IMG/VR virus record: IMGVR_UViG_3300025133_009608
Span: 186,001 to 250,000 of that record
Length of the DNA stretch: 64,000 nt
Strand: one strand, 5' to 3'
The translations under genes and the position numbers were made by a program. The notes under the pieces are model-generated. The model saw only the letters and a list, made by a program, of their open reading frames with translations, made no database searches and was not told the origin of the DNA. Shown here piece after piece: positions 38,366 to 60,678 of this stretch (position 1 is the stretch's first letter; every line of letters starts with the position of its first letter).

Positions 38366-39757
38366 TTATCCACTAAACCCAAGCTCGTCACGAGTATAGT
38401 GCAGCTCCTCTCCGTCGTCGTCTATTGTCTGAACATTTACTGGGGCTCCCCATACTTCAAACAAGTATCCCATTACCTTTTCTAGGTGCTTGGGATCGAG
38501 AGTCCCAATGTCTCCACTTGTATGTTCGAGCTCCAAGCCCTCATGACTTGCCTTTACAATGCACAGCTCCGGGGCGCGATACCCATAGCAATCAGAAATC
38601 AAATTCTCAACCACATCGTCTAAATCTGTTGATATAATCTTAATAATTTTTCCGGCCTTTTGGTCTTTTATATACTTATAGCAAAACAGCTTGAGGCCCT
38701 CCGCGATCTCCTTGGTCAAATAGGTTCGCACGAAAGATACGTCATCTTCATTTGCAACAACTTCATAAATTTTTTCTAGGCCATTTATTTCAGACTCTCC
38801 GTCTTCAAACTTTTTGTCCCAACGCTTCTTAATGTCGTTTAAAAGAGTGAAGCCCAAAAAGTATGGATTAATTTTTAACTTATTTCCGCCAGGCTGAACA
38901 ACTCTTTCGTGAATCTTTACGAACTCTAGGTATTCGGCCTCTGTGATAGACTTCATTCTGTACATTATCTCCGCGTGAATCCAAGATGCAATCCCTTCGT
39001 TTAGTCGCTGAGTAACGTACTGTGGATAAAAATAATATGACTCCTCTCTGATGATCTCAAAAATATCTCGCTCCCAATCTTCCAAGTTTGCGTGCTGAAT
39101 TAAAAACCACAAAAGATCATATTCAGGATGCGGAGGAAACGTGGGGGGCTTTCTCTCTTTTTTCTTTTTCGGGGTACCAAGAATGTCTACGAACTCATCT
39201 TTGTGCCCTGCTCGCGCTTTATAGGACTTCTTAGGGAGCCCTTTACCATAGGGCTTTCTCAAAACGCCCCTGTGCCAGTCTATATTTTTATCCATAGAAA
39301 AGGCTACATCCATAATATGCTCAACGGCCTTTAGTCCGTGTTTCTCAATGTAGTCATCTATCCTTCTTGCCCTCTCTGCTGCGTGATAAACCATTTTGTT
39401 ATCTGTCTGTTTGAATAAATAATTATGCTTAAAACAGGCAGAGTGACCGAGCACATGTGCCATTACCATTATGTTTGCAATATCTGAATTTGTATCCAAT
39501 AAAAAAGCGTATGACGGATCATTATTTAGCACAAGCTCATAAACCTTTGAGTGTCCCATCTCTCCTTGCATCTTCTGATACTCATAAGACTGCCCATACG
39601 ACCAGTGCCTTGATCTTGACGGAAGACCATAAGACATAACCTCCAAAAGAACCTCCTGTCCAACAACTTCCCATTGGACTGGATAATAATCGAGATTCAA
39701 CTCTTCTTTTGCAATCTTTTCAATTTCTTTAAGTTTTTCTTTTAAATTTTTATTCAT
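38366..39757 (-). CDS. spoVR: SpoVR/YcgB family protein
   Basis: GLPSR..HWSYG, YELVLN.DP, AHVLGH..FKHN, NEGIASW, NPYFLG. Confidence 0.9.
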   Translation of the reverse strand: MNKNLKEKLKEIEKIAKEELNLDYYPVQWEVVGQEVLLEVMSYGLPSRSRHWSYGQSYEYQKMQGEMGHSKVYELVLNNDPSYAFLLDTNSDIANIMVMAHVLGHSACFKHNYLFKQTDNKMVYHAAERARRIDDYIEKHGLKAVEHIMDVAFSMDKNIDWHRGVLRKPYGKGLPKKSYKARAGHKDEFVDILGTPKKKKERKPPTFPPHPEYDLLWFLIQHANLEDWERDIFEIIREESYYFYPQYVTQRLNEGIASWIHAEIMYRMKSITEAEYLEFVKIHERVVQPGGNKLKINPYFLGFTLLNDIKKRWDKKFEDGESEINGLEKIYEVVANEDDVSFVRTYLTKEIAEGLKLFCYKYIKDQKAGKIIKIISTDLDDVVENLISDCYGYRAPELCIVKASHEGLELEHTSGDIGTLDPKHLEKVMGYLFEVWGAPVNVQTIDDDGEELHYTRDELGFSG

Positions 39758-39787
39758 GATATAAGCTGCTCCATGGCACCGGATAGA

Positions 39788-40981
39788 TTATTGACCCTTC
39801 TTTTTCTTCTTGGAAATATTATCTATGTTAAAGAACACTTTTAATGCGTCGAACACCTGGCTTCTCTCCGTTACTCTCATGGATACAAATCTAGTTCTAT
39901 TGATCTCTCGGGCAAGCAGGCTTGATAGCAGATCTCCCTCTCGAATCCACGCCCTATGCTCTGTGCTTGGAATAATCTCCCCGTATCCAATGGCCGTAGT
40001 CAGCGGAAGCAGTTTTTTTATATAGTCAACGCACAGAAGGTTATCTTCGCCCCAGTTGTCTCCATCAGACCACTCCATTATATAATTGTTGTATTCCTCG
40101 GGCGGGTGGTTTGACATAATGTGTTCATATGCCATCTTAAATGCAGAACTACACTTTGTTCCTCCGCCGCTATTTACGCTGAAAAATTGCTCTTCATCGA
40201 CTATGAAGGCTTCGGTGTCATGGGCAATAAATACTAGCTTTATATTATCGTACCTTCTCTTTAAAAACTGCACCATCCAGAAATAAAAGCTCTTCGCTAT
40301 ATATCTCTTCTCCTCAGTCATCGAACCGCTGCGGTCCATCATTGCATATATAACAGCGTTTGAATGATACTCTCTTACCGTATCCCAGGACCGATAGCGA
40401 AAATCTGACTCATTTATGCCATCAATTTTCGCCTCACCCTTAGCTGCATTTCTTTTTATGTTTTGAAGAATTGTTTTCTTCAAATCTAAATCTGGATTTA
40501 TTCCCTTCTTCTCAATTGAATCTACCTCTTCGTACTCTACGGCGATTGAGCTTCCAAGGTTTGGTTCCATCCACGGCAAATCCAGCTCCTTAAGAAGCAC
40601 ATCTACTAACTCGTCTATGGATACTTCCGCATCAAAGGTTCGGGGACCCGTTTCATCTCCAGGCTTTCCATCTCCGGGCTTACCCCTTTGGGGTTTTCCG
40701 TTCCCGATTCTAAATTTATCGCCCGGCTTCGTGCTAACCCCCTGGCCGACACCGCCGTTCTTATTTAGTTTCCCATATTTAAATTTGTACTGATCCAAGA
40801 ACTTTATCGGAACTTTTATCTTCTTATTGCCGTCGGTTGTTATAACATTGTATTCTGTAATAAGATCTTTTCCGTGTTTTCTTATGGCGTCTTTTACCAA
40901 CTCCTTATGCCTGTCAGAATCTCTCTTTCCACGGCGTTTAAGATTCCAAATGTCAGAGAGGCTTTTGCCATTTTTCGACAT
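39788..40981 (-). CDS. yhbH: YhbH/YeaH (DUF444) vWA-like protein
   Basis: D..RH, SNAVIYAMMDRSGSM, FIAHDTEA, SGGGTKCSSA, SDGDNW. Confidence 0.9.
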   Translation of the reverse strand: MSKNGKSLSDIWNLKRRGKRDSDRHKELVKDAIRKHGKDLITEYNVITTDGNKKIKVPIKFLDQYKFKYGKLNKNGGVGQGVSTKPGDKFRIGNGKPQRGKPGDGKPGDETGPRTFDAEVSIDELVDVLLKELDLPWMEPNLGSSIAVEYEEVDSIEKKGINPDLDLKKTILQNIKRNAAKGEAKIDGINESDFRYRSWDTVREYHSNAVIYAMMDRSGSMTEEKRYIAKSFYFWMVQFLKRRYDNIKLVFIAHDTEAFIVDEEQFFSVNSGGGTKCSSAFKMAYEHIMSNHPPEEYNNYIMEWSDGDNWGEDNLLCVDYIKKLLPLTTAIGYGEIIPSTEHRAWIREGDLLSSLLAREINRTRFVSMRVTERSQVFDALKVFFNIDNISKKKKKGQ

Positions 40982-40989
40982 TGCTTATC

Positions 40990-42915
40990 CTAGTTTCTGG
41001 CCATCAGTGAGCTGACGTACTTGAGCAGGTTGTTTGCGCTTTCCGGAGTATACCCATGATGATCACAAAGCGCCTCGATTACTACATTTAACTTTTTAAG
41101 TGCATTTTCATCTGGATTTCTTGTACTGACCGTCAACCTGATGACGTCCTGCCGCTCATCAAATAGCTGCTTCTCGAGACCCTCTCTTAGTCTGGGGTGC
41201 TCTTTGTAATTATAGGTTCCATTATCATTTGCAGAGCGGAGCATCTTTCTAAAGATTTCTTGTCTGAATGATTTCTTTCCGGACTCTGTAATTTTCACCT
41301 TCTCTTCTATTGAGCGCATAAGTCTTTCGTCTGGCTCTCGAAGATTCCCCCACTCATCCTCTATTTTTGAGCCATCCAAAAATGCCTCTACTTGATCCAT
41401 ATAGTTTTGAAGTAAGTTTGAAACCTCTTCTTCGAAGTTTAGGAAGAAAGCTTTTTGAACCTCGTTCTTAGCCAACTTGCTATACTCCTCTATCACAAAG
41501 GTTAAGATATTCTCTAGTCGCTCAATTTCCTTTTCGTCAAGTTTCGGATTGGAGATGAACCCTGATCTAATAGATCGAATTATATCGACTGGAGAAATAC
41601 TAGAAACGCCATCTTCGGCAAGGGTTGCTGAAATTCTATTTATAATATATCGAGGAGACACCCCGTCCATGCCTTCTGATGAAAACTCTTTTCTAAGAGC
41701 CTGAACTTCCATCTTTGTAAAGCCCTCAACGTCATCTCCATTATATAGGCGCATTTTATTCATTATGGATAAGCCCTCATTTTTAGAAGTCTTAAGCCTT
41801 GAGAGCACTGCAAACATAGCGGCACAATGAAGCGTATACGGGGCTATATGAACGCCATCGAATCTAGACTGAGAGATCAGCTTTTCGTATATCTTCATCT
41901 CTTCGCTGACCCGAGTATTGTAAGGAACTTTTACCACAATTATGCGGTCGTGCAGAGCCTCCATCTCATCTTTCGCCAAAAAACGATCGTATTCTGTCTG
42001 GTTTGTGTGGGCTAATAAAAATTCATCTGCATAAATTAATGGAAATCTTCCAGTTTTAATATTCTTTTCTTGTGCCAATGTTAGCAGAACATAGAGGAAT
42101 TTCTGATCGACCTTGAGCATTTCGACGAACTCCATCATCCCGCGATTTGCTATATTTAACTCCCCATCAAATCTGTACGCTCTAGGATCAGATTCTGCTC
42201 CATATTCCCCAATCTTGCTAAGATCCATGGAGCCAACTAATTCTGAAATATCTTGGCTCTTTTTATCTGACGGCACGAAGGTTCCAATTCCAGTTCTAGA
42301 CTGCTCTGATAGTATCACTCTCTTTACTGGGAGGTCTAGAAAGTTCCCATCGTATTTATCTCGAAGGATAAGACCCATAAGAGGGCTTAGCTGCCCACGG
42401 ATTAGGATGCCGTGCTCCTCCTTGAACTGGCCCCTTAGGCTTTCGGGAATTGCGCATAACGGGTCCTCCTGCATTGGGGAGTCTGAGAGTCCGTATAGGG
42501 CGCCCTCGTCTATTCTGGAAAATGCCTCCATTCCTCTTTTTAGCGAAATGGCCAACTGAGACTTACCACTAGAAGTTGGTCCAAACATTAAAAGTATTCT
42601 TCGAGAAACTTCACTGCCAGTAGCTGCGGCCCGAAGGTAGGACATGATTTCTTCTATTGATTCGTCAATACCAAATAAATCATTTTCAAAGAATTTATAA
42701 TTTGTTATATTGCCATCCTCGTCTCTGTCAATTCCGGCGTGTTCGATCATCTTTAGGGCCCGCTCGTGAGCACCCATATGAATCGAGGGATTCGTGATTA
42801 CCATCTCGATATAATCTTTGAGAGTGCCCTTCCACAAGGACTCTTCGCCGGCCTCAATGTGCTCGCCTAGCGCGTCTAAAATTGAAAGATTTTTCTTTGA
42901 AGTCTTTTTTGGCAT
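40990..42915 (-). CDS. prkA: PrkA/YeaG AAA+ serine kinase family protein
   Basis: GPTSSGKS, QDISELVGS, ESDPRAY.FDGELN.ANRG..EFVEMLK, EGMDGVSPR. Confidence 0.92.
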   Translation of the reverse strand: MPKKTSKKNLSILDALGEHIEAGEESLWKGTLKDYIEMVITNPSIHMGAHERALKMIEHAGIDRDEDGNITNYKFFENDLFGIDESIEEIMSYLRAAATGSEVSRRILLMFGPTSSGKSQLAISLKRGMEAFSRIDEGALYGLSDSPMQEDPLCAIPESLRGQFKEEHGILIRGQLSPLMGLILRDKYDGNFLDLPVKRVILSEQSRTGIGTFVPSDKKSQDISELVGSMDLSKIGEYGAESDPRAYRFDGELNIANRGMMEFVEMLKVDQKFLYVLLTLAQEKNIKTGRFPLIYADEFLLAHTNQTEYDRFLAKDEMEALHDRIIVVKVPYNTRVSEEMKIYEKLISQSRFDGVHIAPYTLHCAAMFAVLSRLKTSKNEGLSIMNKMRLYNGDDVEGFTKMEVQALRKEFSSEGMDGVSPRYIINRISATLAEDGVSSISPVDIIRSIRSGFISNPKLDEKEIERLENILTFVIEEYSKLAKNEVQKAFFLNFEEEVSNLLQNYMDQVEAFLDGSKIEDEWGNLREPDERLMRSIEEKVKITESGKKSFRQEIFRKMLRSANDNGTYNYKEHPRLREGLEKQLFDERQDVIRLTVSTRNPDENALKKLNVVIEALCDHHGYTPESANNLLKYVSSLMARN

Positions 42916-42931
42916 TCTACTTTTCTCCTGC

Positions 42932-43219
42932 TTATTTTTCTTCACCAAAGATGTCACGAATAGCTCTCTGGTCACCTTCTCTTATTTTATTAGTAATAAC
43001 CCTGGCCTCTTCTTTTGCTTTTTCAACTATTTCTTCTTTTCTTCTTTCTATCTTACCGAAGGGGGCCGAGACTTTTCTGATCAAAGTTTTATTTTGACAT
43101 TCATCGCATAAAAGATCTTCAAAATGATTATTACAAATTAGTTGTTTATATTTTAAAATTCCATAATTAAAATTATGCTGAGTCAAGCATTTGGTACATT
43201 CAAATGTATATTTTGGCAT
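42932..43219 (-). CDS. FmdB-like zinc-ribbon protein
   Basis: MPKYTFECTKC...CDEC. Confidence 0.7.
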   Translation of the reverse strand: MPKYTFECTKCLTQHNFNYGILKYKQLICNNHFEDLLCDECQNKTLIRKVSAPFGKIERRKEEIVEKAKEEARVITNKIREGDQRAIRDIFGEEK

Positions 43220-47332: not shown

Positions 47333-48871
47333 TCAGGTCCACTCGATTATCTTCCTATCTGGGTACTTCTTTAGTGGGATGTTTCTAGACATTATTATTT
47401 TGAATCCCGGTTCGCTCTGATAAACTTTTATTCGAGCCTCAGAGTGATCTCTTAGATACTTGCAGTTATCAAAAAACTCTACGACAATGGCCTTCTTTTT
47501 CCCCTTGTTTTTTCTGATAACCCTGCCAATTCTCTGAAGTGCTCTTCCGCTGGACTTGCCCGAGCCGGCAAGAATTAACGCATCAAGACTGGGGATGTCG
47601 ACGCCCTGATCAAAAATCTTTGAGGCGATTAGCAAGTCCAGGTTTCCATCTTTCATCTTCTGAATGGCCTCCATTCTATTCTTCGTGCTTCGAGCGCCGT
47701 CCAAAAACTCAACCCTATACTCATCTTGCAGCCTTTCCATAAGAAGCTTGCCATGGGCAACTCTAACTACAAGAATTAGAACTTTTCTTCCGCCATCTAT
47801 TAGCCTTCTCGCGGCCTTTATGATGAGATCGTTTCGCTCCTCGTTCTCTACGATATAATTTTTATACACTTCGTGATATGTCTTGCCAACCTTTCGCATG
47901 GTTGGGACGTTTAAAAAATGTATATCCGGAGGAACCAAGTACTCCTCCCTGATTAGCTTTGTGGCACTGATGTCAACAATTTTTGGGCCAGCCACAGCCT
48001 CGATTAGAAGATCATCCCCGCCATCCCGCCATGGCGTTCCAGAGAGCAAGAACCTGTGTCGAGCAGATGTCGAGGCTTTGTGCAAGAACTGCAAAGTCTC
48101 AGATGCCGCATATTGGCACTCGTCAAAAATAAACAATTGAGCATTCTCAACCGCCGCCCTAACGCTTTCCTTGTTAAGGGCTTTGATATGTTTTTTTGAA
48201 TCTTGAGTTGTATCATTATCTATCGTCTTAACTTTTTTGTTAAATGCAGCAGCAGCAGACCAGATTGTCATTATCGTGATGTCTTTTGACACATCACATT
48301 CTCCGCCTCCGACGATTCCGCAGTCTATCCCATAGGCGTCTTTCATTGTATCTTTCATTTGATATAATAATTCAATCCCAATAACATAGATTACAGTTGG
48401 TATATTGTAATGCGCAGCGATAGAGCAGAGCATAAATGCCTTCCCCGAGCCTGTAGCTGACTTTATTATTCCGCCTCCGGACTTTATGGATGATCTTAGC
48501 GCCTTCTGCTGATAGTCTCTCGGCTCAAATGCCTCCGGGAGCATCTGGATTGGCTCGCCATACTTTGGAACTGGGCGATTATCGATTATTTCATACGTCA
48601 ATTTGTTTTCATCTAAAATTTTTGTCACTATCTTTAGTAGGCCTATATGGCATTTCCCATATTTTGTCATGAGTCGGACTTGCCCATCCCAGCCGCCCTG
48701 GCTCCCTCTCGCTCCGAACCCTCCGCGACCGCCCTGCATATATTTGTACCCAGGATGCTCGTAGCTAGTCGCCTCATCTATGATCTTCGTAACCTCCTGT
48801 GGAATGAATCCGCTTATTTTGCAGTTAACATTATCCAGAGAAATAGAAATTATATCGTCTTCACTGCTCAC
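47333..48871 (-). CDS. Superfamily 2 helicase (UvsW/XPB-like)
   Basis: RDYQ, ATGSGK, DECQ, SGTP, GVDIP, QRIGRVIR. Confidence 0.9.
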   Translation of the reverse strand: MSSEDDIISISLDNVNCKISGFIPQEVTKIIDEATSYEHPGYKYMQGGRGGFGARGSQGGWDGQVRLMTKYGKCHIGLLKIVTKILDENKLTYEIIDNRPVPKYGEPIQMLPEAFEPRDYQQKALRSSIKSGGGIIKSATGSGKAFMLCSIAAHYNIPTVIYVIGIELLYQMKDTMKDAYGIDCGIVGGGECDVSKDITIMTIWSAAAAFNKKVKTIDNDTTQDSKKHIKALNKESVRAAVENAQLFIFDECQYAASETLQFLHKASTSARHRFLLSGTPWRDGGDDLLIEAVAGPKIVDISATKLIREEYLVPPDIHFLNVPTMRKVGKTYHEVYKNYIVENEERNDLIIKAARRLIDGGRKVLILVVRVAHGKLLMERLQDEYRVEFLDGARSTKNRMEAIQKMKDGNLDLLIASKIFDQGVDIPSLDALILAGSGKSSGRALQRIGRVIRKNKGKKKAIVVEFFDNCKYLRDHSEARIKVYQSEPGFKIIMSRNIPLKKYPDRKIIEWT

Positions 48872-49275
48872 TGCTCACTTTTCCTTTCCCTCTTATTCCA
48901 TCGGCCTCGTTCTGAAAATTTTTCAATTCCATGTGGTACCGGTTCGCCGAACTCATCTAGCGCTACAAAAATAATTTTATCAATCGTAATGAGAGACTTC
49001 TTGTCCCTCTTGTTCCTAACCAACACCTTGAGTGTTATCGATGTCGTCCCGAATTCTACAATTTCTGTTCCAAACTCAATAACATCACCAGATTTTGCAG
49101 AATTTAAAAAATTAATTTCAGACATATGAACGGTAACTACATTTCTTGTGCCTAGTTGACAAAATACAAAAATGCTTGCTTCTTCGTCAATTAGCGATAA
49201 AAGCCTTCCGCCAAAGAGGGTGCCCCTTGGGTTTAAATCTTGTGGCTTTACAAGATAACGGCTTCTAAATTTCAC
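48868..49275 (-). CDS. Hotdog-fold acyl-CoA thioesterase
   Basis: DLNPRGTLFGGRLL..IDE; GTTSIT; FVALD. Confidence 0.85.
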   Translation of the reverse strand: MKFRSRYLVKPQDLNPRGTLFGGRLLSLIDEEASIFVFCQLGTRNVVTVHMSEINFLNSAKSGDVIEFGTEIVEFGTTSITLKVLVRNKRDKKSLITIDKIIFVALDEFGEPVPHGIEKFSERGRWNKRERKSEQ

Positions 49276-50207
49276 TTTATCTTTCCAGCCTCTTTGCATA
49301 AGGTTGCAATATCTAGGCCGGCGCAATCGATTTTCTTTTTAGTTAAGTGATAATGACTCACAAACCCACTAAAACTACAGGCTACGGCACTGGGAGAGAC
49401 TCCGGAGACGCCCAGTCCGCCATCATCAGTTGGCGACACAAGGGGGATTTCAATTCCGTTACTAATGGCCGCCCACAAAGCCTTTAGAGCTCTTATCTGC
49501 ACGTCATAAAAGCCCAAGTGAGAAGACAGCTTCTTTCCTCTTACTATTGCGTTCGTAACTACGGGCCTTTTGCCAAATCCATTATCAACGTACCAATCTT
49601 GATATTTTTCATAATAAGCATTTGAAATCTCAACGCCAATGGAGCTGTGATTCCATTTCGCGCCGCCGGCGTGCCACGCTCCATGCTGAGTATCTAGCAA
49701 CTGATATATTGTTCCATCATTATCTATACAAAAATGTACTGATATTCCTCTGTTATTAAGAACGCTGGCACAAGACGCCGAAGACAAGCAAACATCCCAA
49801 TGATTTACAAACATAGTTGGCTTCCGGTCTTCCTTTCCTGAATAATCATAATAATTTCCAGAGCCCGCCTTAAGTCCACCGGACTCATCCCACAAGACCA
49901 CCTTATGCCATCTTATGGGCAGTGGCTTGCCGTTGTGAATTATATATTTTTCGTCACTACAGGCCTCGAGACCACTGGGCGCCGAGGTATCAGCGCTCGG
50001 CAAGTGGCTTGAGATATTCGCTTGGCGCTCAGTCCATATTCTTCTATATGTGGACGGACCCACTAATCCATCTGATTTTATCTTATTCTTTTTTTGCCAC
50101 TTCTTTACTGCATCAACCAGATCGTCGTCAAAATTGACAACTCCAAACCAGGTTGGATCCCATGATAATTTTTCGGCACTTGCAGAGTTATAAAAGTTTT
50201 TATCCAT
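49272..50207 (-). CDS. N-acetylmuramoyl-L-alanine amidase with PG-binding domain (endolysin candidate)
   Basis: VKKWQK...DGLVGPST; HW...SVHFCID.DG, AWHAG, SIGVEI, HYH...K.DC. Confidence 0.85.
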   Translation of the reverse strand: MDKNFYNSASAEKLSWDPTWFGVVNFDDDLVDAVKKWQKKNKIKSDGLVGPSTYRRIWTERQANISSHLPSADTSAPSGLEACSDEKYIIHNGKPLPIRWHKVVLWDESGGLKAGSGNYYDYSGKEDRKPTMFVNHWDVCLSSASCASVLNNRGISVHFCIDNDGTIYQLLDTQHGAWHAGGAKWNHSSIGVEISNAYYEKYQDWYVDNGFGKRPVVTNAIVRGKKLSSHLGFYDVQIRALKALWAAISNGIEIPLVSPTDDGGLGVSGVSPSAVACSFSGFVSHYHLTKKKIDCAGLDIATLCKEAGKIK

Positions 50208-50211
50208 AACA

Positions 50212-52635
50212 TTACCGTCTGCGTCTCTTGTCTATGATAGAGCCGCGCTGAAGCTTGTTAAAGCCCGACTTCTTCTTCTTGATTTTTCTGTGAACCTGGT
50301 CGGCAACGGTGTTAACGTTATCCTCTTCAAGATCGAGGGTCATTGCTGCCACTCTTCCTTTTTCTTTTTGGCCGGCGACCTCTGCCTGCATTCTGCTCTC
50401 TTGTTTGAGGCTTTCAATTCGGTCCCTGGGAAGCCCGAGTCCGGCGAACCAAGAGTAAATCTTTATGGAATCGGAGTCACTCTCTATGTCGTATACTCCC
50501 TGGAATACGGAGGCTCCGTTTGTTTGCTCTGAAATCATATGAAAACAATAATTTATATTTATTGCCGGAAGCTTGTTAAGAACGCCCTCTGGGGCTGAAA
50601 TTATAACTCCACCGACCCTAGTCTGAGAGATGTCAAAGCCAGATGCCAACATATTCCCACTAAGACTCTCTATTACCGCCTCTGCTAGCGCCGTCTCCTC
50701 CATATAATCTTCAACTTCAATCATCCCATAAACAGAGCAGTCTCCGCATGAGATTATCTTTCCAAAGTCACTTGGATCCATTGAAGTATATCGAGACGGA
50801 CGAGACGTAAGTGTATTAAATACATGAAGCGGTTCAACAATTGCATTGTTAGATACGCTCCAAAAGTTATTCTGACTGAGGTTAGAATAAATTTGCTCGA
50901 TTCTCGCATTATCAGCCACAATAAGACTCGAAACCATATTGTCAGAAGTCATTCTTGCAAGTCTAGAAAGGGTTTCTATCGAGTTTCGCTTAGACCGGGC
51001 GTCCTCGGTTGCCTTCGGAAGAATGTAAATCACCCCCACTGGCATGCCGGTCTCAAATAACATCCCCACCATAGTGTCAACGCTTGAAGAGCCCGTTCCG
51101 CCGCCGCCCGATATTGCCAAATAAACCATGTGGTTTCCCGCAGCAACGTCTCCTACGAACTTATGTATATCGGACTCGTTTTCTTCAAAAATCTCTCGAC
51201 CAAGATCCAGATCCTTTCCCGTCCCACCAAGACTGCCCTCAAGAAGCAGCTTCTGAGTGGGAAGAACATCTATAAACTCCAGGTCTTGCGCGGAAGTATT
51301 AATTACTCCAACGTCATATCCTTTTTTATGCATTGTTTCTGCAATTCTCGACCCGGCCTGACCGACACCTATTACTGCTATCTCAATGCTGACAGACTGC
51401 TGAGTTATTATGCTTGGCACATCGTCCTCCATAGTTTTGCTTACCTTGGCCCTTAGAGCCTCAAGGACGTTTTCATCCAAAGAGCTTCCAGAATCTTCGG
51501 GCTGCTCTGTCGAATCATCAAAGGCGTCCATGAGTGCCTCATTTTCAGCCTCAATTTGCTTTGTTTTTTTCGTCTTCTTCTTTATCTTTACATCTTTGAC
51601 GCTAGTTTTCTTCGCTGTCATAAAATCCTCATAATAGCTCTTGAGCTGTGTTAAAATTTGATATTCGCTGGTTATCGCAAATTTTACCGGAGTTTCGTTT
51701 GCATTATACGAAATAACATCACAAAGATACTTGGAATGTTTATTCATAGGATCGGCATTCGTAGTTATTATATCACACCCCATCGCAGAGGCCTCATAGA
51801 GACTCATGCCCAGACCCTCTCGGGTTGACGGCATTAGCACACAATGAGAATTGTCATAAATACTAACCAGGTCTTTCGACACTAATATAGAATTTATTAG
51901 TATGATATTCTTACATTTTTCAGCCAGGGCCCGATCCCTATCAGAAAGAAGCCCGCTTATTGTCAGGGTTGTGCTCGCTCCAGAGTTAGTTGAGAATTTC
52001 GTATATGCCTTAATTACTTCTGTTGTATTTTTCTGACTAAACGATGGGTTTGTAGACCCGGGATGAAAAAATCTTATGCCAGAAAGGTCTTTTTTGTCTA
52101 CCTTTCGAGAAAAGGTGTCTTGATTTACGTAATTCCAGGACATTTTTTTTGCGTTTTCATATTTCCCAAAGATCTCTTTTGATGTATCTGTCAGGCACCA
52201 TATTTCATCAAACGTTCTGTATGAATTGTTATCTATATACCTCTTTATCGACCACTCCGGCATTGGTATGTCTATAATTTTCAAATTTGGGTTGCCCGTC
52301 CTGGCCCTTGTTGTCCATTGAGCCTTCGGCATGAAGGTTTCGAATGATATTATAAGATCTATATTATTTTTGGCAACAATATGTTCGATCCGAGTAGTTT
52401 GCGCGACAATTGTCAACCCGGCATGCAGATTGGCGTCGTTTGGCCGGGGGTACACCGGAGAGAATCCCGCCCGGCCATGAAGTCTTTTGAACTTTGGCTT
52501 TGCAGTATAAATAACTTTATTGTTTTTCGACAGCATGTCTCCAAGAGATTTCGCCAAATAATAAAGACCCGACTCGAATAGATACGTCTTTATTAGAATG
52601 CTCTTGTTTTTAATGTTATCTACTTCGCTATCCAT
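50212..52635 (-). CDS. In-frame fusion of a GT-B (GT4-like) glycosyltransferase and a tubulin/FtsZ-family GTPase (PhuZ/TubZ/CetZ-like), with internal RBS+ATG at 51621
   Basis: GT: PSTREGLGMSLYEA. Tubulin: GVGQAG, INTSAQDL, GGGGTGS, DPSD. Confidence 0.85.
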   Translation of the reverse strand: MDSEVDNIKNKSILIKTYLFESGLYYLAKSLGDMLSKNNKVIYTAKPKFKRLHGRAGFSPVYPRPNDANLHAGLTIVAQTTRIEHIVAKNNIDLIISFETFMPKAQWTTRARTGNPNLKIIDIPMPEWSIKRYIDNNSYRTFDEIWCLTDTSKEIFGKYENAKKMSWNYVNQDTFSRKVDKKDLSGIRFFHPGSTNPSFSQKNTTEVIKAYTKFSTNSGASTTLTISGLLSDRDRALAEKCKNIILINSILVSKDLVSIYDNSHCVLMPSTREGLGMSLYEASAMGCDIITTNADPMNKHSKYLCDVISYNANETPVKFAITSEYQILTQLKSYYEDFMTAKKTSVKDVKIKKKTKKTKQIEAENEALMDAFDDSTEQPEDSGSSLDENVLEALRAKVSKTMEDDVPSIITQQSVSIEIAVIGVGQAGSRIAETMHKKGYDVGVINTSAQDLEFIDVLPTQKLLLEGSLGGTGKDLDLGREIFEENESDIHKFVGDVAAGNHMVYLAISGGGGTGSSSVDTMVGMLFETGMPVGVIYILPKATEDARSKRNSIETLSRLARMTSDNMVSSLIVADNARIEQIYSNLSQNNFWSVSNNAIVEPLHVFNTLTSRPSRYTSMDPSDFGKIISCGDCSVYGMIEVEDYMEETALAEAVIESLSGNMLASGFDISQTRVGGVIISAPEGVLNKLPAININYCFHMISEQTNGASVFQGVYDIESDSDSIKIYSWFAGLGLPRDRIESLKQESRMQAEVAGQKEKGRVAAMTLDLEEDNVNTVADQVHRKIKKKKSGFNKLQRGSIIDKRRRR

Positions 52636-52705: not shown

Positions 52706-53650
52706 TTAAAGAGAGCCGAGAATTTCGCAATACTTAGAAAACAAAGCCTCGGATGAGAAGTTTTCAACGGCATACTCATAAGCTCCAGCCTTCAAATTTC
52801 CACGAAGCCTTTCATCTTCCATTATTTCAATTATTGCCTCAGAATAGTCCTCAATCGTCTTATTAACGATGATTCCGGTCTCATAGTTTTTGCCATGCAA
52901 ATATATTTTAGGATGAGTTACGGAGCAGACGCCAGACGCCCAACTCTCCATAAGGGTTTGGGATTTTGTTTCAGATATTGACGTACCAACGTATAAGCTG
53001 GCGCTTTTAGCTAAGTCAATATGATCAGAATATGAATATGGAGAAGGGTGCCCTATAAATTTAAAATCATATTGTGGCAAAGCCTTTTCCAACTTCAGGC
53101 CAAAGCCTATATCTTTCGCAAAATGCTTAGAGTTTCCCTTCCACATAATAAACCCAGCATCATTATCGCTAGGCTTCCACAGCTCCATCTCTGGCCCAAC
53201 AATGAGAGTCGACATTTTCCTCAAATCAAATTTATGTTCTTTCGCTATTTTATATTTCAACCTATCATTTACAGATAACACATAGTTCGGAGCAGCCATC
53301 CCAAGTAGTGTCGATTCTCTCTTTAGATCTACACAGTCCAAGACGTTTGGGCCCATTATCAACGGAGTCCCAGTATTATTTGAAATCTTTCCGGCGACTC
53401 GATAATGCCCCCCGCTGCCGCTCCAATGATGAGCATAGTCAGACCCCTCAATGCTTCTTTTTAGTCTTGCGATATCTACAATTGAGTAATAATTAATTCC
53501 ATCAAGTTTTTGCTCTACTTTTAGTGTGGTAAATATATCTATTTGAAATCGTTTATCCATTGCCTTTATAAAATTATACAGGGACATTCCGGGGCCATTT
53601 GTAAACCGCCTTGTAGCCCCTACATTGAATGCAAAAATTGTTATTTTCAT
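52706..53650 (-). CDS. GT-B (GT4-like) glycosyltransferase
   Basis: SISETKSQTLMESWASG, ETGIIV. Confidence 0.75.
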   Translation of the reverse strand: MKITIFAFNVGATRRFTNGPGMSLYNFIKAMDKRFQIDIFTTLKVEQKLDGINYYSIVDIARLKRSIEGSDYAHHWSGSGGHYRVAGKISNNTGTPLIMGPNVLDCVDLKRESTLLGMAAPNYVLSVNDRLKYKIAKEHKFDLRKMSTLIVGPEMELWKPSDNDAGFIMWKGNSKHFAKDIGFGLKLEKALPQYDFKFIGHPSPYSYSDHIDLAKSASLYVGTSISETKSQTLMESWASGVCSVTHPKIYLHGKNYETGIIVNKTIEDYSEAIIEIMEDERLRGNLKAGAYEYAVENFSSEALFSKYCEILGSL

Positions 53651-54504
53651 TTTAAGATTTTACCAACTTCACCTGTAAGCTTGGGATATATTTTATAAGA
53701 CAATTCGAAGAGCTCGTCGTCAAAAAGCCCCAGGAATCTATCGTCTTTTAAATATCTCTTCCAGCGACTCAAAACTTTCATTTCCTGAGCCGCCCCATTC
53801 TTCGTTGTTAGGTCAAAGCTGCTTCCAAACCCATTAGATGGTACCTTGGAGATTCCCTTGTCCGAAAAGTCCAAATCCAATTTTTTGGATATTTGCTTTC
53901 GATACTTTTCTGACAAAAACCATTCGTTATAAGATATAGAAATCGAATCCCCAAGAAAAGATGTCTCTCCTAGAAGCTCTCTTGCATGCTCTTTCCATCT
54001 TTCCGCCATTCTATTGTCTGCCCATCCGATTTCGCTGGTTTGATCTATATTCTTTTTGATAGAGATTAGGCTCTTTCCTTCCTCTTTTCGAATGGTGTTA
54101 TTTCTATCAAACAATCTTATTCTACTCGCAAATAAGTTAAACGGATCCCGCAAGATTAAGATCTTATATAGCCTCTTCGGCCTTCTCAGTTTCATCAGAC
54201 TTTTTGGGTCCTTTTTGTACTTTATCATTCTTGCAAGAGATGAGTCTTCACAGTTAAATGCGAAGTATGGGAGGTTCGCCGGGAATGGAGACCCACTTCC
54301 GATTATTCGTCCACGATCCACATACATATTCGGCGGCTTGTGGCATATGATGTCATTATGAAAATAAATTGGCTCTTTAGTTTGAGAAAAAATCCAATGC
54401 ATTACCGCATGATGTCCCGATCTTCTCATCGCATAAAACTCGAGTTGATTTTTTACCGACCGAAACTTACGACGACACCCCTTAAGCTTCGCGGCCATAA
54501 TCAT
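53647..54504 (-). CDS. Sulfotransferase-like protein
   Basis: MRRSGHH (5'-PSB-like) and ILRDPFNLFASR (3'-PB-like) motifs. Confidence 0.6.
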   Translation of the reverse strand: MIMAAKLKGCRRKFRSVKNQLEFYAMRRSGHHAVMHWIFSQTKEPIYFHNDIICHKPPNMYVDRGRIIGSGSPFPANLPYFAFNCEDSSLARMIKYKKDPKSLMKLRRPKRLYKILILRDPFNLFASRIRLFDRNNTIRKEEGKSLISIKKNIDQTSEIGWADNRMAERWKEHARELLGETSFLGDSISISYNEWFLSEKYRKQISKKLDLDFSDKGISKVPSNGFGSSFDLTTKNGAAQEMKVLSRWKRYLKDDRFLGLFDDELFELSYKIYPKLTGEVGKILK

Positions 54505-54850
54505 CTTCTATGCGAACAACGTCGTCCAACTGATGCGTTGATACCTCAATCAATTCCACGTTTACTTCATTTGCGGCAAACCGATGAGTCAGGCCGACCG
54601 GAACATGAAACGTCTGCCCTGGAAATAATTTTATTATCTTTAAATCCGTCATATCGTTGAACGCTCCCCTGGTGTGCAGATAAAGGATTCCAGACTTAAC
54701 CATTATGGTTTCTTCCTTTTCCTCATGATACTGAAACGACAGTTGGTGCCCAGCTTTAATGAACAATATTTTCCCCACATATCCCGATTCGGAGCAAGAC
54801 TTCGCCCAGATCTCTTCGTGTCCCCAAGGTTTTTCGACTTTACTTAGCAT
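54482..54850 (-). CDS. Cupin protein (mannose-6-phosphate isomerase type II-like)
   Basis: KPWG, LSFQYHEEKEET, HRF, EVST. Confidence 0.85.
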   Translation of the reverse strand: MLSKVEKPWGHEEIWAKSCSESGYVGKILFIKAGHQLSFQYHEEKEETIMVKSGILYLHTRGAFNDMTDLKIIKLFPGQTFHVPVGLTHRFAANEVNVELIEVSTHQLDDVVRIEDDYGREA

Positions 54851-57347: not shown

Positions 57348-57611
57348 CTAGTAGTATGGGTTTGTGCCAGAAAGGTGATCGGTAACATCCTCAATCTCGC
57401 CGATATCTGGAAACACTTCTCTAAAATGTCTTTGGACTCCAAGCATCATAGTTATTTTTGATGATGCGCACCCATGACACCCTCCACCCATTATTATTTT
57501 AAGTGAATTGTCACTTTCATTGAATTCATGAATGGAAATGTTTCCTCCGTGCATTTCTAAGCCAGAATTTATATCTTCATCTATGATTTTCTGTATCTCT
57601 TCTTTATTCAT
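57348..57611 (-). CDS. Nfu/NifU C-terminal domain protein
   Basis: L..HGG, GGCHGC..S..T. Confidence 0.85.
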   Translation of the reverse strand: MNKEEIQKIIDEDINSGLEMHGGNISIHEFNESDNSLKIIMGGGCHGCASSKITMMLGVQRHFREVFPDIGEIEDVTDHLSGTNPYY

Positions 57612-57996
57612 TCTCTATCCCACGTTTTTTCTTCCAATCACTGATTGCAGCCTTGATGGCATCTTCTGCAAGGACAGAGCAGTGAATTTTGACCGGCGGC
57701 AATGAGAGCTCTCTCGCAATATGGGAATTGGAAATAGCCTCCGCCTCATCGGTGGTCCTTCCGATGACCATGGTGGTCGCCAGTGAGCTAGAGGCCACGG
57801 CTGAGCCACACCCAAATGTCTTGAATTTTGCGTCCTCGATGATACCGTTGTCATTAATCTTGAGTTGCAGTTTCATCAAATCGCCGCAGGCTGGCGCGCC
57901 TACCATGCCAGTACCAACATTCGGATCAGACTTATCTAAGCTGCCCATGTTTCTTGGACTGTCAAAGTGATCCATTACCTTGTCTGAATATGCCAT
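57604..57996 (-). CDS. iscU: Fe-S scaffold IscU
   Basis: PRNMG, APACGD, FGCGSA, LPPVKIHCS. Confidence 0.95.
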   Translation of the reverse strand: MAYSDKVMDHFDSPRNMGSLDKSDPNVGTGMVGAPACGDLMKLQLKINDNGIIEDAKFKTFGCGSAVASSSLATTMVIGRTTDEAEAISNSHIARELSLPPVKIHCSVLAEDAIKAAISDWKKKRGIENE

Positions 57997-58019: not shown

Positions 58020-59003
58020 TTATTGGCCAATTGCGCTCAGCATTTCCAGGTCGTTCTCATACATCTCTTTTAATAGCGCCTTCCAGTCATATTCTGGGTC
58101 CCAGCCGAGCTTCTCTCGAGCCTTGCTCGCGTCTCCTAGTAGGTATGGGACATCTGACGGTCTCAGAAATCTTTTATCCAACTCATATACTTCTTCAAAC
58201 TCCAGGCCGGCGAGATAACAAACGTACCTGAGCATTTCTCCTATTGTTGCTCCCGATCCTGTGGCTATGACGTAATTTTCCGGAGCTTCTTGCTGTAGCA
58301 TCAGCCACATCGCTTTTACATAGTCCTTGCTGCAGCCTTCATCTCTAAATGCGGACAGGTCGCCCATTTTCAACGTATCTTGAAGCCCCAACTTAACGGA
58401 AGCAACTCCGTGAGTTATCTTTCGAGCTGCAAAGCTCACGCCTCGGCGCAGAGAAGAGTGATTGAACAAAATTCCAGAAACGGCGAACAACCCATAAGCT
58501 TCTCGGTAATTATTTACGGACAGGTGAGCCGCACACTTAGAAATAGCGTAGGGAGAGCGGGGATTGAGGGGAGAGTTCTCGTTATACCCCTCCCTTGGGC
58601 AGTCAACTCCCCCTAGCATTTCGCTCGTGGAGGCTTGATAATAGCGAGTGGCCGGAGAGTAGTCTTTCAGCAAAGAAAGATGCATTATCACGGCTTCTGC
58701 GTTTACCTGAAATACCTTTACCGGATTCACAAAGCTGTAACCAACATGACTGGCGGCCCCTAGGTTGTAAAACTCATGAGGCTGTACGTCATGGATCAAC
58801 CGGCCGATAAAAATGGGATCAGAAAGGTCTCCCTCGGTGTAGTGGAAGTTTTCATCATCCATTAGATGAGCTATGTTCTCCGTTCCAGAATTAACGCTCT
58901 TGCGAATACTAACTCCAAATACCTCATACCCCTTACTTAGCAGAAATTCTGCCAAATATGAACCATCCTGTCCCGCCGTGCCTGTTATTATTGCCCTAAG
59001 CAT
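58020..59003 (-). CDS. gmd: GDP-mannose 4,6-dehydratase
   Basis: TGTAGQDGSYL, YQASTSE, PRSPYAISK, LRPSDV. Confidence 0.92.
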   Translation of the reverse strand: MLRAIITGTAGQDGSYLAEFLLSKGYEVFGVSIRKSVNSGTENIAHLMDDENFHYTEGDLSDPIFIGRLIHDVQPHEFYNLGAASHVGYSFVNPVKVFQVNAEAVIMHLSLLKDYSPATRYYQASTSEMLGGVDCPREGYNENSPLNPRSPYAISKCAAHLSVNNYREAYGLFAVSGILFNHSSLRRGVSFAARKITHGVASVKLGLQDTLKMGDLSAFRDEGCSKDYVKAMWLMLQQEAPENYVIATGSGATIGEMLRYVCYLAGLEFEEVYELDKRFLRPSDVPYLLGDASKAREKLGWDPEYDWKALLKEMYENDLEMLSAIGQ

Positions 59004-60219: not shown

Positions 60220-60678
60220 TTATTTCGCCTCAGAGTCGTCGATATTAAAGCATTGAACTTTTAACAGGGCACTGCTTATGAGGCCAGTAAGAGTTGTATA
60301 TAGCGCCGTTGACATTCCAACTCCTAGTTCTGTAATCAAATCCTGAATTGTACTTATATCTTCTATATTTATGCCAGCAAACCCACTAAGCATTTCTATA
60401 AAACCTATAACAGTTCCAATCATTCCTATTGTGAGAACCAGATCGCTCATAAACCATCCAAATTCTATATTCGGGGTCAGACCTCGATCGATCTGCCATG
60501 ATTTATGCCCACACCACACGGACGTAACAATTAAAACGAGTAAGTTTACAAAGCTCAGCTTGGTAAAGTCACTATCCCAAAGAGCCTCTCCCAGGCCCAT
60601 ATAGAGTCCCTGGGTTATCGCCCCGAGCATGAGCGAAAAAAACAACCACCAGGTTAAAAATGTTTTATATTTATTCAC
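60220..60678 (-). CDS. MotA/TolQ/ExbB proton-channel family protein
   Basis: IGMIGTVIG and GMSTALYTTLTGL. Confidence 0.85.
   Translation of the reverse strand: MNKYKTFLTWWLFFSLMLGAITQGLYMGLGEALWDSDFTKLSFVNLLVLIVTSVWCGHKSWQIDRGLTPNIEFGWFMSDLVLTIGMIGTVIGFIEMLSGFAGINIEDISTIQDLITELGVGMSTALYTTLTGLISSALLKVQCFNIDDSEAK

Follow-up and report, generated by a model that had tools for sequence, protein, structure and literature searches.

Prokaryotic and phage tubulins are known for moving DNA (TubZ), positioning the phage nucleus and capsids (PhuZ) and organising division (FtsZ), and none is known to carry an enzyme in the same polypeptide. TubZ and RepX of the Bacillus plasmids pXO1 and pBtoxis (PDB 4ei7, 2xka, 3m89) are type III partition tubulins, whose operon partner TubR, a small DNA-binding adaptor, and tubC centromere repeats lie next to the gene. 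PhuZ of PhiKZ-like jumbo phages (Chimalliviridae) co-occurs with chimallin and split multisubunit RNAP genes, has an acidic C-terminal tail that binds the next subunit, and tolerates N-terminal tags compatible with filament formation. Bacillus phage G encodes a protein described as an FtsZ/tubulin-like GTPase that was not detected in proteomics (PMC12484599). Elsewhere, cytoskeletal polymers position glycosyltransferases non-covalently, through adaptor proteins, as when FtsZ or MreB guides peptidoglycan synthases and plant cortical microtubules guide cellulose synthase. In-frame internal starts that give co-assembling isoforms are also established; in phage T7 gene 4A/4B, one ORF carries an internal Shine-Dalgarno (SD) sequence and start codon in the same frame, and the long and short products share the oligomerisation domain and can mix in one assembly.

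Here we analysed a 64,000-nt window (positions 186,001 to 250,000 of IMG/VR virus record IMGVR_UViG_3300025133_009608, a 316-kb contig of an uncultured marine jumbo phage). An earlier note, made from the sequence alone, had called a glycosyltransferase (GT)-tubulin fusion with an internal start giving two isoforms, without naming the strand. That observation is confirmed. ORF listing gave a single 807-aa ORF on the minus strand, and a Pfam search found Glycos_transf_1 at aa 200–298 (E 4e-12, 46.5 bits against a cut-off of 26.4) and the Tubulin/FtsZ GTPase domain PF00091 at aa 418–583 (E 2.7e-14, 54.3 bits against 33). Every motif listed in the note is present, and the arrangement is far beyond chance. 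Features of the locus are collected in the table below.

Table. Features of the GT-tubulin locus and its neighbourhood (window coordinates; all on the minus strand).
Coordinates	Feature	Observations
50212..52635	807-aa ORF encoding the GT4-TubZ-like fusion, predicted 89.6 kDa; stop codon 50212-50214	100% identical copies in two IMG/VR contigs
51622..52635	Glycosyltransferase domain, aa 1-338; GT-B fold (predicted), GT4-like (retaining type)	Pfam PF00534/PF13692; AF2 pLDDT 94.3, pTM 0.90; Foldseek top hits PBCV NY2A B736L, BshA, MshA, PimA and PglA
51793..51819	EX7E motif (EGLGMSLYE, aa 273-281), GT4 catalytic / sugar-nucleotide-binding signature	Both Glu residues (E273, E281) invariant in 60/60 fused clusters and in all 44 GT sequences, fused or free
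51626..51630	SD-like GAGGA, formed by the Glu-Asp codons at the end of the GT domain	AGG-core motif in 41/41 fused loci; duplex energy with the anti-SD <= -5.9 kcal/mol in all 41, against 11% of 742 other in-frame Met codons at <= -6
51619..51621	Internal in-frame ATG (M339 of ...SYYEDF-MTAKK), ancestral start codon of the tubulin gene	ATG in 41/41 fused loci; aligns with the start Met of the free tubulins; the same ATG is the start in free loci nested among fused ones
51391..51621	Charged N-terminal extension of the tubulin (aa 339-415), the linker in the fusion; Lys-rich, then acidic	AF2 pLDDT <50 at 345-357, 373-387 and 397-414, with two short helices; motifs ENxxL(M)xAF and LxxLKxK conserved in fused and free forms
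50212..51621	469-aa TubZ-like tubulin predicted from the internal start, predicted 51.2 kDa
51349..51369	T1 nucleotide-binding loop GVGQAGS (aa 423-429)	Invariant or nearly so in 60 fused and 54 free clusters
51085..51111	T4 tubulin signature SGGGGTGSS (aa 509-517)	Invariant in 114 clusters; also the site where relatives carry inteins
50761..50781	T7-loop region MDPSDFG (aa 619-625), with the acidic residues expected to activate GTP hydrolysis in the polymer	D-P-S-D-F (aa 620-624) invariant in 114/114 clusters; aligns with HFDASEF of RepX (4ei7)
50215..50289	Conserved polybasic C-terminal tail (aa 783-807, RKIKKKKSGFNKLQRGSIIDKRRRR)	K, I, K, F, Q, S, I, D and R invariant across clusters; net charge up to +8; hydrophobic moment in the 99th percentile
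52706..53650	Second GT4-like glycosyltransferase directly upstream, part of the conserved sugar module	Pfam; a homologue lies upstream in 36 of 66 loci
49272..50207	PG_binding_1 + Amidase_2 (N-acetylmuramoyl-L-alanine amidase), 4 nt downstream of the tubulin stop	Pfam; directly downstream of the tubulin in 34 of 66 loci, including the deepest free-tubulin clade
47333..48871	ERCC3/ResIII-type helicase, first gene of the conserved downstream replication module (resolvase-like nuclease, IstB-like ATPase, DnaB)	Pfam; downstream of the tubulin in 51 of 66 loci
54482..54850	Cupin / mannose-6-phosphate-isomerase-like protein of the sugar module	Pfam; a homologue is present in 16 loci
58020..59003	GDP-mannose 4,6-dehydratase (supplies a deoxyhexose precursor)	Pfam PF16363, E 3.5e-96

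The NTSAQDL motif lies at aa 446–452 of the same protein. AF2 modelling gave a pLDDT of about 95 for the GT and 75–90 for the tubulin, with a low-confidence linker between them; this connector of about 75 aa is mostly disordered.

We next asked whether the fusion could be an error, since the earlier note had named a lost stop codon or sequencing error as the alternative and had set the reads and relatives as the test. Logan contigs of runs X1, X2 and X3, at depths of 32.7, 12.2 and 3.9, bridge the identical junction with no indel; X1 and X2 may be the source samples, and because these are assembled contigs they confirm the majority sequence but cannot exclude minor length variants of the T4 run. 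About 60 protein clusters of roughly 800 aa, at 57–87% identity, carry both domains. Across distinct related loci, 41 of 66 are fused in frame with differing junction sequences. An error is therefore excluded for this genome.

To trace the origin of the fusion, we examined the 25 unfused loci. Wherever enough upstream sequence exists, the same GT gene nearly always sits directly upstream, and in the junctions read its stop overlaps the tubulin start, ending 4–20 nt inside the tubulin gene in another frame. The Glu/Lys/Gly-Asp/Glu codons at the GT C-terminus form the tubulin's SD sequence. The SD-to-ATG spacing is 4 or 7 nt in fused loci and 5, 6 or 8 nt in free ones, and a change from the latter to the former puts both genes in one frame and removes the GT stop. 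The fusion is therefore a 1-nt frame merger of an overlapping, translationally coupled gene pair. A careful IQ-TREE tree requires five changes of state, three of them forced by starred branches; none of 200 bootstrap trees allows a single change, and free clades are nested within fused ones with 100/100 and 99/94 support. Thus, the fusion was gained or lost at least 3–5 times, and it is the majority state in the marine clade. Programmed +1 slippage on the T-run of unfused junctions, which would make the same fusion, was rejected as a general mechanism, because the GAGGA(T/C)TTTTATG pattern occurs only in one freshwater clade (L010-type) and other free junctions have no slippery run; it remains a low-probability possibility.

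We then asked whether the internal start is retained beyond what the coding sequence requires. In the window, GAGGA is followed by TTTT and the ATG, with a duplex energy of -6.1 kcal/mol that places it in the top 28% or so of gene starts there. The G at -9 is present in 41/41 fused loci, and the SD core persists through E>K, ED>GD and D>E substitutions, with the E codon always GAG (background 48%) and the K codon always AAG (background 46%). The ±30-nt stretch around the site folds at -2.8 kcal/mol, against -9.3 for the ORF background, and is in the least-structured fifth in 39/41 loci, with a GC content of 25% against 38%. The GT's own start has a weaker SD, -2.8 here and -3.8 on average, against -6.1. 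Some features temper this picture: the 4-nt spacing in the window is short, most fused relatives having 7 nt; SD use in this genome is only moderate, with 28% of putative starts reaching -5.9 kcal/mol against 15% of internal Met codons; and part of the YY(E/K)(D/E) conservation could reflect the last helix of the GT rather than the SD. Taken together, the data strongly support, but do not prove, two products.

To place the tubulin, we compared its sequence and predicted fold with known structures. RepX (4ei7) is the best profile hit in the PDB (E 1.1e-24, against about 1e-11 for FtsZ) and the best fold hit (TMt 0.78), and the Foldseek top hits are 4ei7, 2xka/2xkb and 3j4s. Plasmid RepX genes match at about 25% identity, and overall identity to TubZ/RepX is only about 22–25%. 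Like these proteins, the predicted model has long C-terminal helices followed by a flexible basic tail. Many close relatives carry the TubZ-like C-terminal domain (Pfam PF22453 / PF21493), whereas the window protein itself gave no hit to it at E <= 1, although its predicted fold covers the TubZ C-terminal region. TubZ-like clusters with E <= 1e-30 number 227. Unlike TubZ and RepX, it has the extra N-terminal extension, is fused or coupled to a GT, and is encoded by lytic-looking jumbo-phage contigs rather than plasmids. A TubZRC-type partition system was rejected: among the window ORFs scanned the neighbours are GTs, an amidase and a helicase with no TubR-like gene, and no tandem or centromere-like repeat was found between 40 and 64 kb. 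Among 50,697 GenBank phage records the only match was the phage G protein (feature '138: xxxxx'; 24.8% identity over 81% of the tubulin part, E 6e-17), which is very divergent, comes from a Gram-positive host and is not reported as fused to a GT. Among 185,579 species genomes there was one hit, on a 16.5-kb contig of an Actinomycetota MAG that is probably binned phage DNA, so the family is essentially viral and the hit gives no firm host clue.

Structural neighbours of the GT were only generic GT4 enzymes at 10–16% identity, from which no specific donor or acceptor can be inferred. Sugar genes sit directly upstream of the tubulin in more distant phage relatives (loci L106 and L110), and a bacterial TubZ-like protein sits inside a Wza/Wzz/Wzy polysaccharide locus. 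The contigs of five further distant tubulin relatives were too short to be informative.

The sequence comparisons themselves establish the in-frame joining of a GT4-type GT to a TubZ/RepX-like tubulin GTPase through the tubulin's own extension, the descent from separate overlapping genes, the repeated change of state, and the retention of the ATG, SD core and AT-rich, structure-poor stretch in every fused locus; what follows is inference. It is likely that ribosomes starting at the GT start codon make the 89.6-kDa GT-tubulin and that those starting at the internal site make the 51.2-kDa tubulin, and since the internal site has the better SD in the window and most relatives, free tubulin is probably in excess. 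More speculatively, both forms share the same polymerisation surfaces and would co-assemble into GTP-dependent filaments, in which a fraction of subunits would carry an active GT on a flexible tether; the tolerance of PhuZ for N-terminal tags makes an N-terminal GT plausible. Such filaments would concentrate or move the GT and couple the sugar module (a second GT4, a GT2 in relatives, a cupin, GDP-mannose dehydratase) to whatever the filament organises. Virion parts, the cell envelope and phage DNA are candidate cargoes, which the conserved position between the sugar and replication modules does not tell apart. Polymerisation and GT activity are inferred from sequence and predicted structure alone; both activities look intact, with EX7E, T4 and T7 invariant, and T1 at least nearly so, in fused and free forms. 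We hold this explanation as a whole to be somewhat more likely than not.

The interpretation in the earlier note is thus partly supported. Its two isoforms of about 90 and 51 kDa are likely and its fusion is conserved; its PhuZ framing is not supported, and its proposal that the long form co-polymerises and carries glycosylation to capsids, DNA or the envelope remains inference. The note knew of no described GT-tubulin fusion, and we likewise found none in the literature searched. Phage tubulins, GT4 enzymes and dual-product ORFs are each already described; what differs here is that the enzyme is part of the tubulin polypeptide, that the internal start is demonstrably the start of a formerly separate gene, and that the inferred assembly would be an open-ended polymer rather than a ring as in the T7 case. 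The analogy to cytoskeleton-guided glycan synthesis is functional only.

The strongest rival, which we consider possible but unlikely, is that the fusion is real but functionally neutral, a tolerated by-product of 1-nt indels at an overlapping junction. In this view the working species would be a free tubulin from the internal start and a GT whose tubulin appendage is irrelevant, or two merely co-transcribed proteins with unrelated roles. The toggling on the tree favours this reading, as do the single nucleotide sufficient to switch state and the deepest clade, which has the tubulin without an adjacent homologous GT; repeated loss shows that the fusion is dispensable. Against it, the fused state persists through 57–87% protein divergence in most marine lineages with junction-length changes always in multiples of three, GT-tubulin adjacency with overlap is kept nearly everywhere even when the genes are unfused, and sugar genes abut the tubulin in more distant relatives.

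Less likely still is that only the full-length protein is made, with the conserved Met and purine-rich codons reflecting protein-level constraint or a relic of the ancestral start. Elongating ribosomes can occlude internal sites, the window's spacing is short, and the YYED motif lies at the end of the last GT helix. However, the SD core survives amino-acid replacements with its synonymous positions fixed, the site lies in a local trough of RNA structure and GC, and lineages that reverted to separate genes use exactly this ATG, so the site was intact in their fused ancestors.

A PhuZ-type spindle that centres a chimallin shell and traffics capsids, with the GT riding along, is very unlikely. 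It rests on the jumbo-phage genome, a weak, partial PHROG hit to 'tubulin PhuZ' (E 5.9e-5, GTPase part only) and a Foldseek match to PhuZ of phage Noxifer (E 7e-12), to which identity is 12%. The best sequence and fold matches are TubZ/RepX, then CetZ and FtsZ, and PhuZ is absent from the 60 PDB sequence hits listed and the top 50 fold hits. The tail is basic, not acidic, and among the roughly 45 ORFs scanned in the window, which covers 64 of 316 kb, none hits chimallin or a multisubunit RNAP. An assembly or sequencing artefact, suggested by the single T that separates the window junction (T4) from the unfused L010-type junction (T5), is all but ruled out by the three runs and two IMG/VR assemblies, by the closest relative (P0002, 87% identity), which has the same junction peptide, and by 40 other fused loci with non-homopolymer junctions.

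The conserved "Rosetta-stone" fusion, together with the ancestral overlapping pair, argues that in a cosmopolitan group of marine and freshwater jumbo phages a TubZ-like filament and a GT would work together, a directly testable link between a viral cytoskeleton and glycosylation. A bolder possibility, which we consider doubtful, is a polymer acting as a moving scaffold for glycan synthesis, in which dual initiation would set the ratio of plain to enzyme-bearing subunits and a treadmilling TubZ-like filament would carry an active GT to its substrate. This would be the first tubulin-superfamily protein with a covalently attached enzyme, and it would hint that a whole branch of TubZ-like proteins, including a bacterial TubZ-PilM/FtsA fusion inside a Wzy-type locus, works with polysaccharide machinery rather than in DNA partition. 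The locus is also an unusually clear natural record of gene fusion and fission at an overlapping junction, showing how a retained internal ribosome-binding site lets one ORF keep making the old protein, as inferred here, while adding a chimeric one.

Two smaller features complete the description of the ORF. We considered the C-terminal tail as a membrane-targeting amphipathic helix, but despite its high hydrophobic moment it has very low hydrophobicity and a charge of +8, so that binding to membrane, DNA or an adaptor cannot be told apart. Inside the GT part, and without any claim of promoter function, there is one 11/12 sigma-70-like match (52376..52349, minus strand).

We first asked whether the fusion gene described in the earlier note is present. 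The observation held: a single ORF lies exactly at the coordinates the note had given, and we place it on the minus strand. Pfam locates Glycos_transf_1 / Glyco_trans_1_4 at aa 200-298 and the Tubulin/FtsZ GTPase domain at aa 418-583, both above their gathering scores. PHROGs calls the first part a glycosyltransferase (GT), but yields only a weak, partial hit to 'tubulin PhuZ' for the second. On the minus strand the junction reads GAGGA, TTTT, ATG, with the ATG encoding M339 in ...SYYEDF-MTAKK. The motifs that the note listed are all present, and the predicted masses of the full-length protein and of the product from M339 are 89.6 and 51.2 kDa.

The surrounding sequence belongs to IMG/VR contig IMGVR_UViG_3300025133_009608 (316,664 bp), and an identical copy of the region occurs in a second assembly. 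Nearly all genes lie on one strand, and they include DnaB, an IstB-like ATPase, a resolvase-like nuclease, an ERCC3-type helicase, a type IA topoisomerase, ribonucleotide reductase, PhoH, a PrkA/YeaH/SpoVR triad, a PG_binding+Amidase_2 lysin, a second GT4 (GT4b), a cupin and GDP-mannose 4,6-dehydratase. This is an uncultured marine jumbo phage. None of the scanned ORFs hits chimallin or a multisubunit RNA polymerase.

Coordinates of the fusion gene and of other features, in the window unless a locus is named
Position	Strand	Feature	Detail
50212..52635	-	GT-tubulin ORF	807 aa
51630..51626	-	GAGGA	Shine-Dalgarno-like sequence at the junction
51621..51619	-	Internal ATG	M339
52349-52376	-	Sigma-70 promoter match	11/12, TTGCCA-16-TATAAT
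49272-50207	-	PG_binding_1 + Amidase_2 lysin	starts 4 nt after the tubulin stop
38366-42975	-	PrkA (AAA + kinase), YeaH/DUF444-like and SpoVR-like triad	complete
57604-57996	-	NifU-like Fe-S scaffold	
60220-60678	-	MotA/ExbB-like proton-channel protein	
3968-5380	-	Poly(A) polymerase / CCA-adding family enzyme	
24377-26623	-	Type IA topoisomerase	four zinc ribbons
27976-29859	-	ORF without Pfam or PHROG match	627 aa
10626-11864		ORF with SLT transglycosylase domain	
11457-11528		12-nt unit TTCAGGTGCTGG	repeated six times, 96% identity, inside the SLT ORF
L109:5001-7457		TubZ-like tubulin joined to PilM/FtsA actin-like ATPase (protein P0265)	818 aa
L111:31-3290		Two tubulin-family genes in tandem	408 aa and 601 aa

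We next asked whether the fusion is real. Logan contigs of three sequencing runs, X1 (depth 32.7), X2 (12.2) and X3 (3.9), cross the junction with no differences and no indels; X1 and X2 may be the source samples. A search with the 469-aa C-terminal piece returned 120 top clusters in two length classes, in which about 60 are roughly 800 aa and carry PF00534 plus PF00091 at 57-87% identity, and about 54 are 450-476 aa and contain tubulin only. At the DNA level, 66 distinct loci from IMG/VR and JGI metagenomes (numbered L) divide into 41 fused and 25 free, and the fused junctions differ in sequence and length (EDFM, EDFIM, KDHKM, EENVM, GDFKM and others) but are always in frame. The alternative raised in the earlier note, a sequencing error or a private lost stop codon, is therefore excluded. 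Many relatives of 800-980 aa, found outside the window (P0148, P0151, P0154, P0181, P0182, P0214, P0244, P0254 and P0256), are not fusions but carry an intein with a LAGLIDADG homing endonuclease, inserted at about profile position 170, which is the T4 GGGGTGS nucleotide-binding loop.

To determine how the fusion arose, we examined the free loci. In those with enough upstream sequence, the homologous GT gene (31-47% identical) nearly always sits directly upstream of the tubulin. In the junctions that we read, the GT stop lies 4-20 nt inside the tubulin gene in a different frame, as in L010 (...KYCEDFYGTK followed by the stop, with GAGGATTTTTATGG), L021, L022, L026, L027, L042 and L046. The codons for the last conserved GT residues, Y-(E/K/G)-(D/E), form the Shine-Dalgarno (SD) sequence of the tubulin. 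SD-to-ATG spacing is 5, 6 or 8 nt in free loci and 4 or 7 nt in fused ones. One nucleotide therefore decides between two overlapping, translationally coupled genes and one fused ORF. In the freshwater-type unfused clade (L010, L064, L069, L075, L084 and L090), the junction about 25 nt upstream of the tubulin ATG carries GAGGA(T/C)TTTT(T)ATG, where a +1 slip of tRNA-Phe on the T-run would read straight into the tubulin ATG and give the same fusion protein, but no stimulatory element was seen and other free clades lack the run.

A careful IQ-TREE tree of the tubulin core, with 70 rows and five more distant free sequences as outgroup, needs 5 changes of state, 3 of them forced by well-supported branches, and no bootstrap tree allows a single change. 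Two free clades are nested inside fused ones, the L010 group (100/100) and L042/L046 (inside a 99/94 clade), and a quick tree agrees. Although the basal branching is unresolved, all outgroups are free, so free-with-overlap is the parsimonious ancestral state.

We then asked whether the internal start is likely to be used, for which the evidence is comparative rather than direct, but strong. Every fused protein keeps a Met that aligns with the initiator Met of the free tubulins. In all 41 fused loci the ATG is intact, G at -9 is invariant, and A-8, G-10 and A-11 are nearly so. Predicted pairing with the anti-SD is <= -5.9 kcal/mol in 41/41 loci, whereas only 11% of 742 other in-frame Met codons in the same ORFs reach -6. 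The purine core survives amino-acid changes (GAGGA, AAGGA, GGAGA, GAGGT), and the synonymous choice is always G, with the Glu codon always GAG and the Lys codon always AAG, against 48% and 46% in the same ORFs. Three features temper this signal: the window and its closest relative, P0002, have a 4-nt spacing while most fused relatives have 7, SD use in this genome is only moderate, and part of the motif's conservation could be protein-level. The 60 nt around the ATG fold at -2.8 kcal/mol against -9.3 for other windows of the ORFs, are among the least structured fifth in 39/41 loci, and have a GC content of 25% against 38%. Lineages that reverted to separate genes start the tubulin at this same ATG, so the site was intact in their fused ancestors. 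The GT's own start has a weaker SD, at -2.8 kcal/mol in the window and -3.8 on average over 23 loci with roughly assigned starts, suggesting that free tubulin is made in excess. A sigma-70 promoter match also lies inside the GT coding part, about 730 nt upstream of the internal ATG; if active, this site, a consensus match only, would give a transcript that can only make the short tubulin.

To place the tubulin among its relatives, we searched with a profile of 23 family members. The profile hits RepX (TubZ of pXO1, PDB 4ei7) at E 1.1e-24, followed by FtsZ and CetZ at 1e-8 to 1e-12, phage c-st TubZ at 2.6e-6 and TubZ-Bt at 1.6e-4, and PhuZ is not among the 60 hits listed. The AF2 model of the full protein (mean pLDDT 81; GT about 95, tubulin 75-90, linker <50) matches B. 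cereus TubZ best (TMt 0.78), then CetZ2 and TubZ-Bt. In the viral fold library the best hit is an unfused family member (41% identity), whereas PhuZ of phage Noxifer is at 12% identity. Plasmid RepX genes match at about 25%, and the only GenBank phage match is the phage G tubulin-like gene at 24.8% (PMC12484599). Relatives carry Pfam TubZ-like_C. The T1, T4 and T7 motifs are invariant in 60 fused and 54 free clusters, so a polymerizing GTPase is expected on sequence grounds. Unlike TubZ systems, there is no TubR-like neighbor and there are no centromere-like repeats nearby. The family is large, with 227 clusters at 50% identity and E <= 1e-30, but is almost absent from 185,579 cellular species genomes, where a single hit fell on a short MAG contig. 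One more distant relative, at locus L111, has two tubulin-family genes in tandem, the second with an AAA_lid_14 hit.

The AF2 model of the GT part (pLDDT 94.3) is a predicted GT-B fold whose nearest neighbors are GT4 retaining enzymes: PBCV NY2A B736L, BshA, MshA, PimA and PglA. Profile hits cover the nucleotide-sugar domain. The EX7E glutamates and some 20 other positions are invariant across 44 fused and free GTs. The enzyme is therefore probably active in both arrangements, as inferred from sequence, which does not point to a donor or acceptor.

Gene order provides a further link between tubulin and glycan enzymes. The order sugar module (GT4b, sometimes GT2, cupin), then GT4, then tubulin, then (amidase), then helicase...DnaB is conserved, with GT4b upstream in 36 loci, the amidase directly downstream in 34, including the deepest free clade, which lacks the adjacent GT, and the helicase downstream in 51 of 66. 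More distant phage relatives keep sugar genes right next to the tubulin: one locus has GT2-GT4-small ORF-tubulin-helicase (L106), and another has GT/sulfotransferase/epimerase-tubulin-helicase-DnaB (L110). In addition, a bacterial TubZ-like protein fused to a PilM/FtsA actin-like domain, with the tubulin N-terminal and the actin-like ATPase C-terminal, lies inside a Wza/Wzz/initiating-transferase (Bac_transf)/GT2/Wzy polysaccharide locus (L109), a tubulin-actin fusion in a glycan-export cluster. These recurrences, together with the fusion itself, argue that this TubZ-like branch works with glycan-building enzymes, an inference from gene neighborhood that rests in part on one bacterial locus.

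We propose that two products share one polymerization domain and would form mixed GTP-dependent filaments, in which some subunits carry the GT on a flexible tether of about 75 aa. In this model, the two initiation sites set the ratio of the products, and the filament concentrates or moves the enzyme. The conserved polybasic C-terminal tail could bind membrane, DNA or an adaptor, and its composition does not decide which. The architecture, its origin, its conservation and the intact motifs are established by the analysis; dual initiation is inferred and likely, while GTP-dependent polymerization and glycosyl transfer are predicted from sequence, and co-polymerization and scaffolding are speculative. 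The interpretation in the earlier note, which cited jumbo-phage PhuZ filaments and proposed a free tubulin plus a GT-tubulin that co-polymerizes and carries glycosylation to the filament, is partly supported: two products are likely, but the PhuZ framing is not supported and delivery of the enzyme by a filament remains conjecture.

Compared with characterized systems, the C-terminal part is a divergent TubZ/RepX-like tubulin, not a PhuZ, and the system departs from TubZRC because it has no TubR or tubC nearby. The dual-start logic resembles in-frame internal starts such as that of T7 gene 4A/4B. Full-text searches for a tubulin or TubZ-glycosyltransferase fusion in phages found nothing relevant, in line with the earlier note, whose author knew of no such fusion. 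Automatic JGI labels already read 'cell division GTPase FtsZ/glycosyltransferase', so the architecture sits unremarked in databases.

The PrkA, YeaH/DUF444-like and SpoVR-like genes encoded here in a phage genome are stress- and sporulation-associated in bacteria. The NifU-like, MotA/ExbB-like, poly(A) polymerase / CCA-adding family and topoisomerase genes are other unusual cargo of the window. A 12-nt unit is repeated six times within the SLT transglycosylase ORF. The 627-aa ORF with no Pfam or PHROG match at all is the largest unannotated gene in the window.
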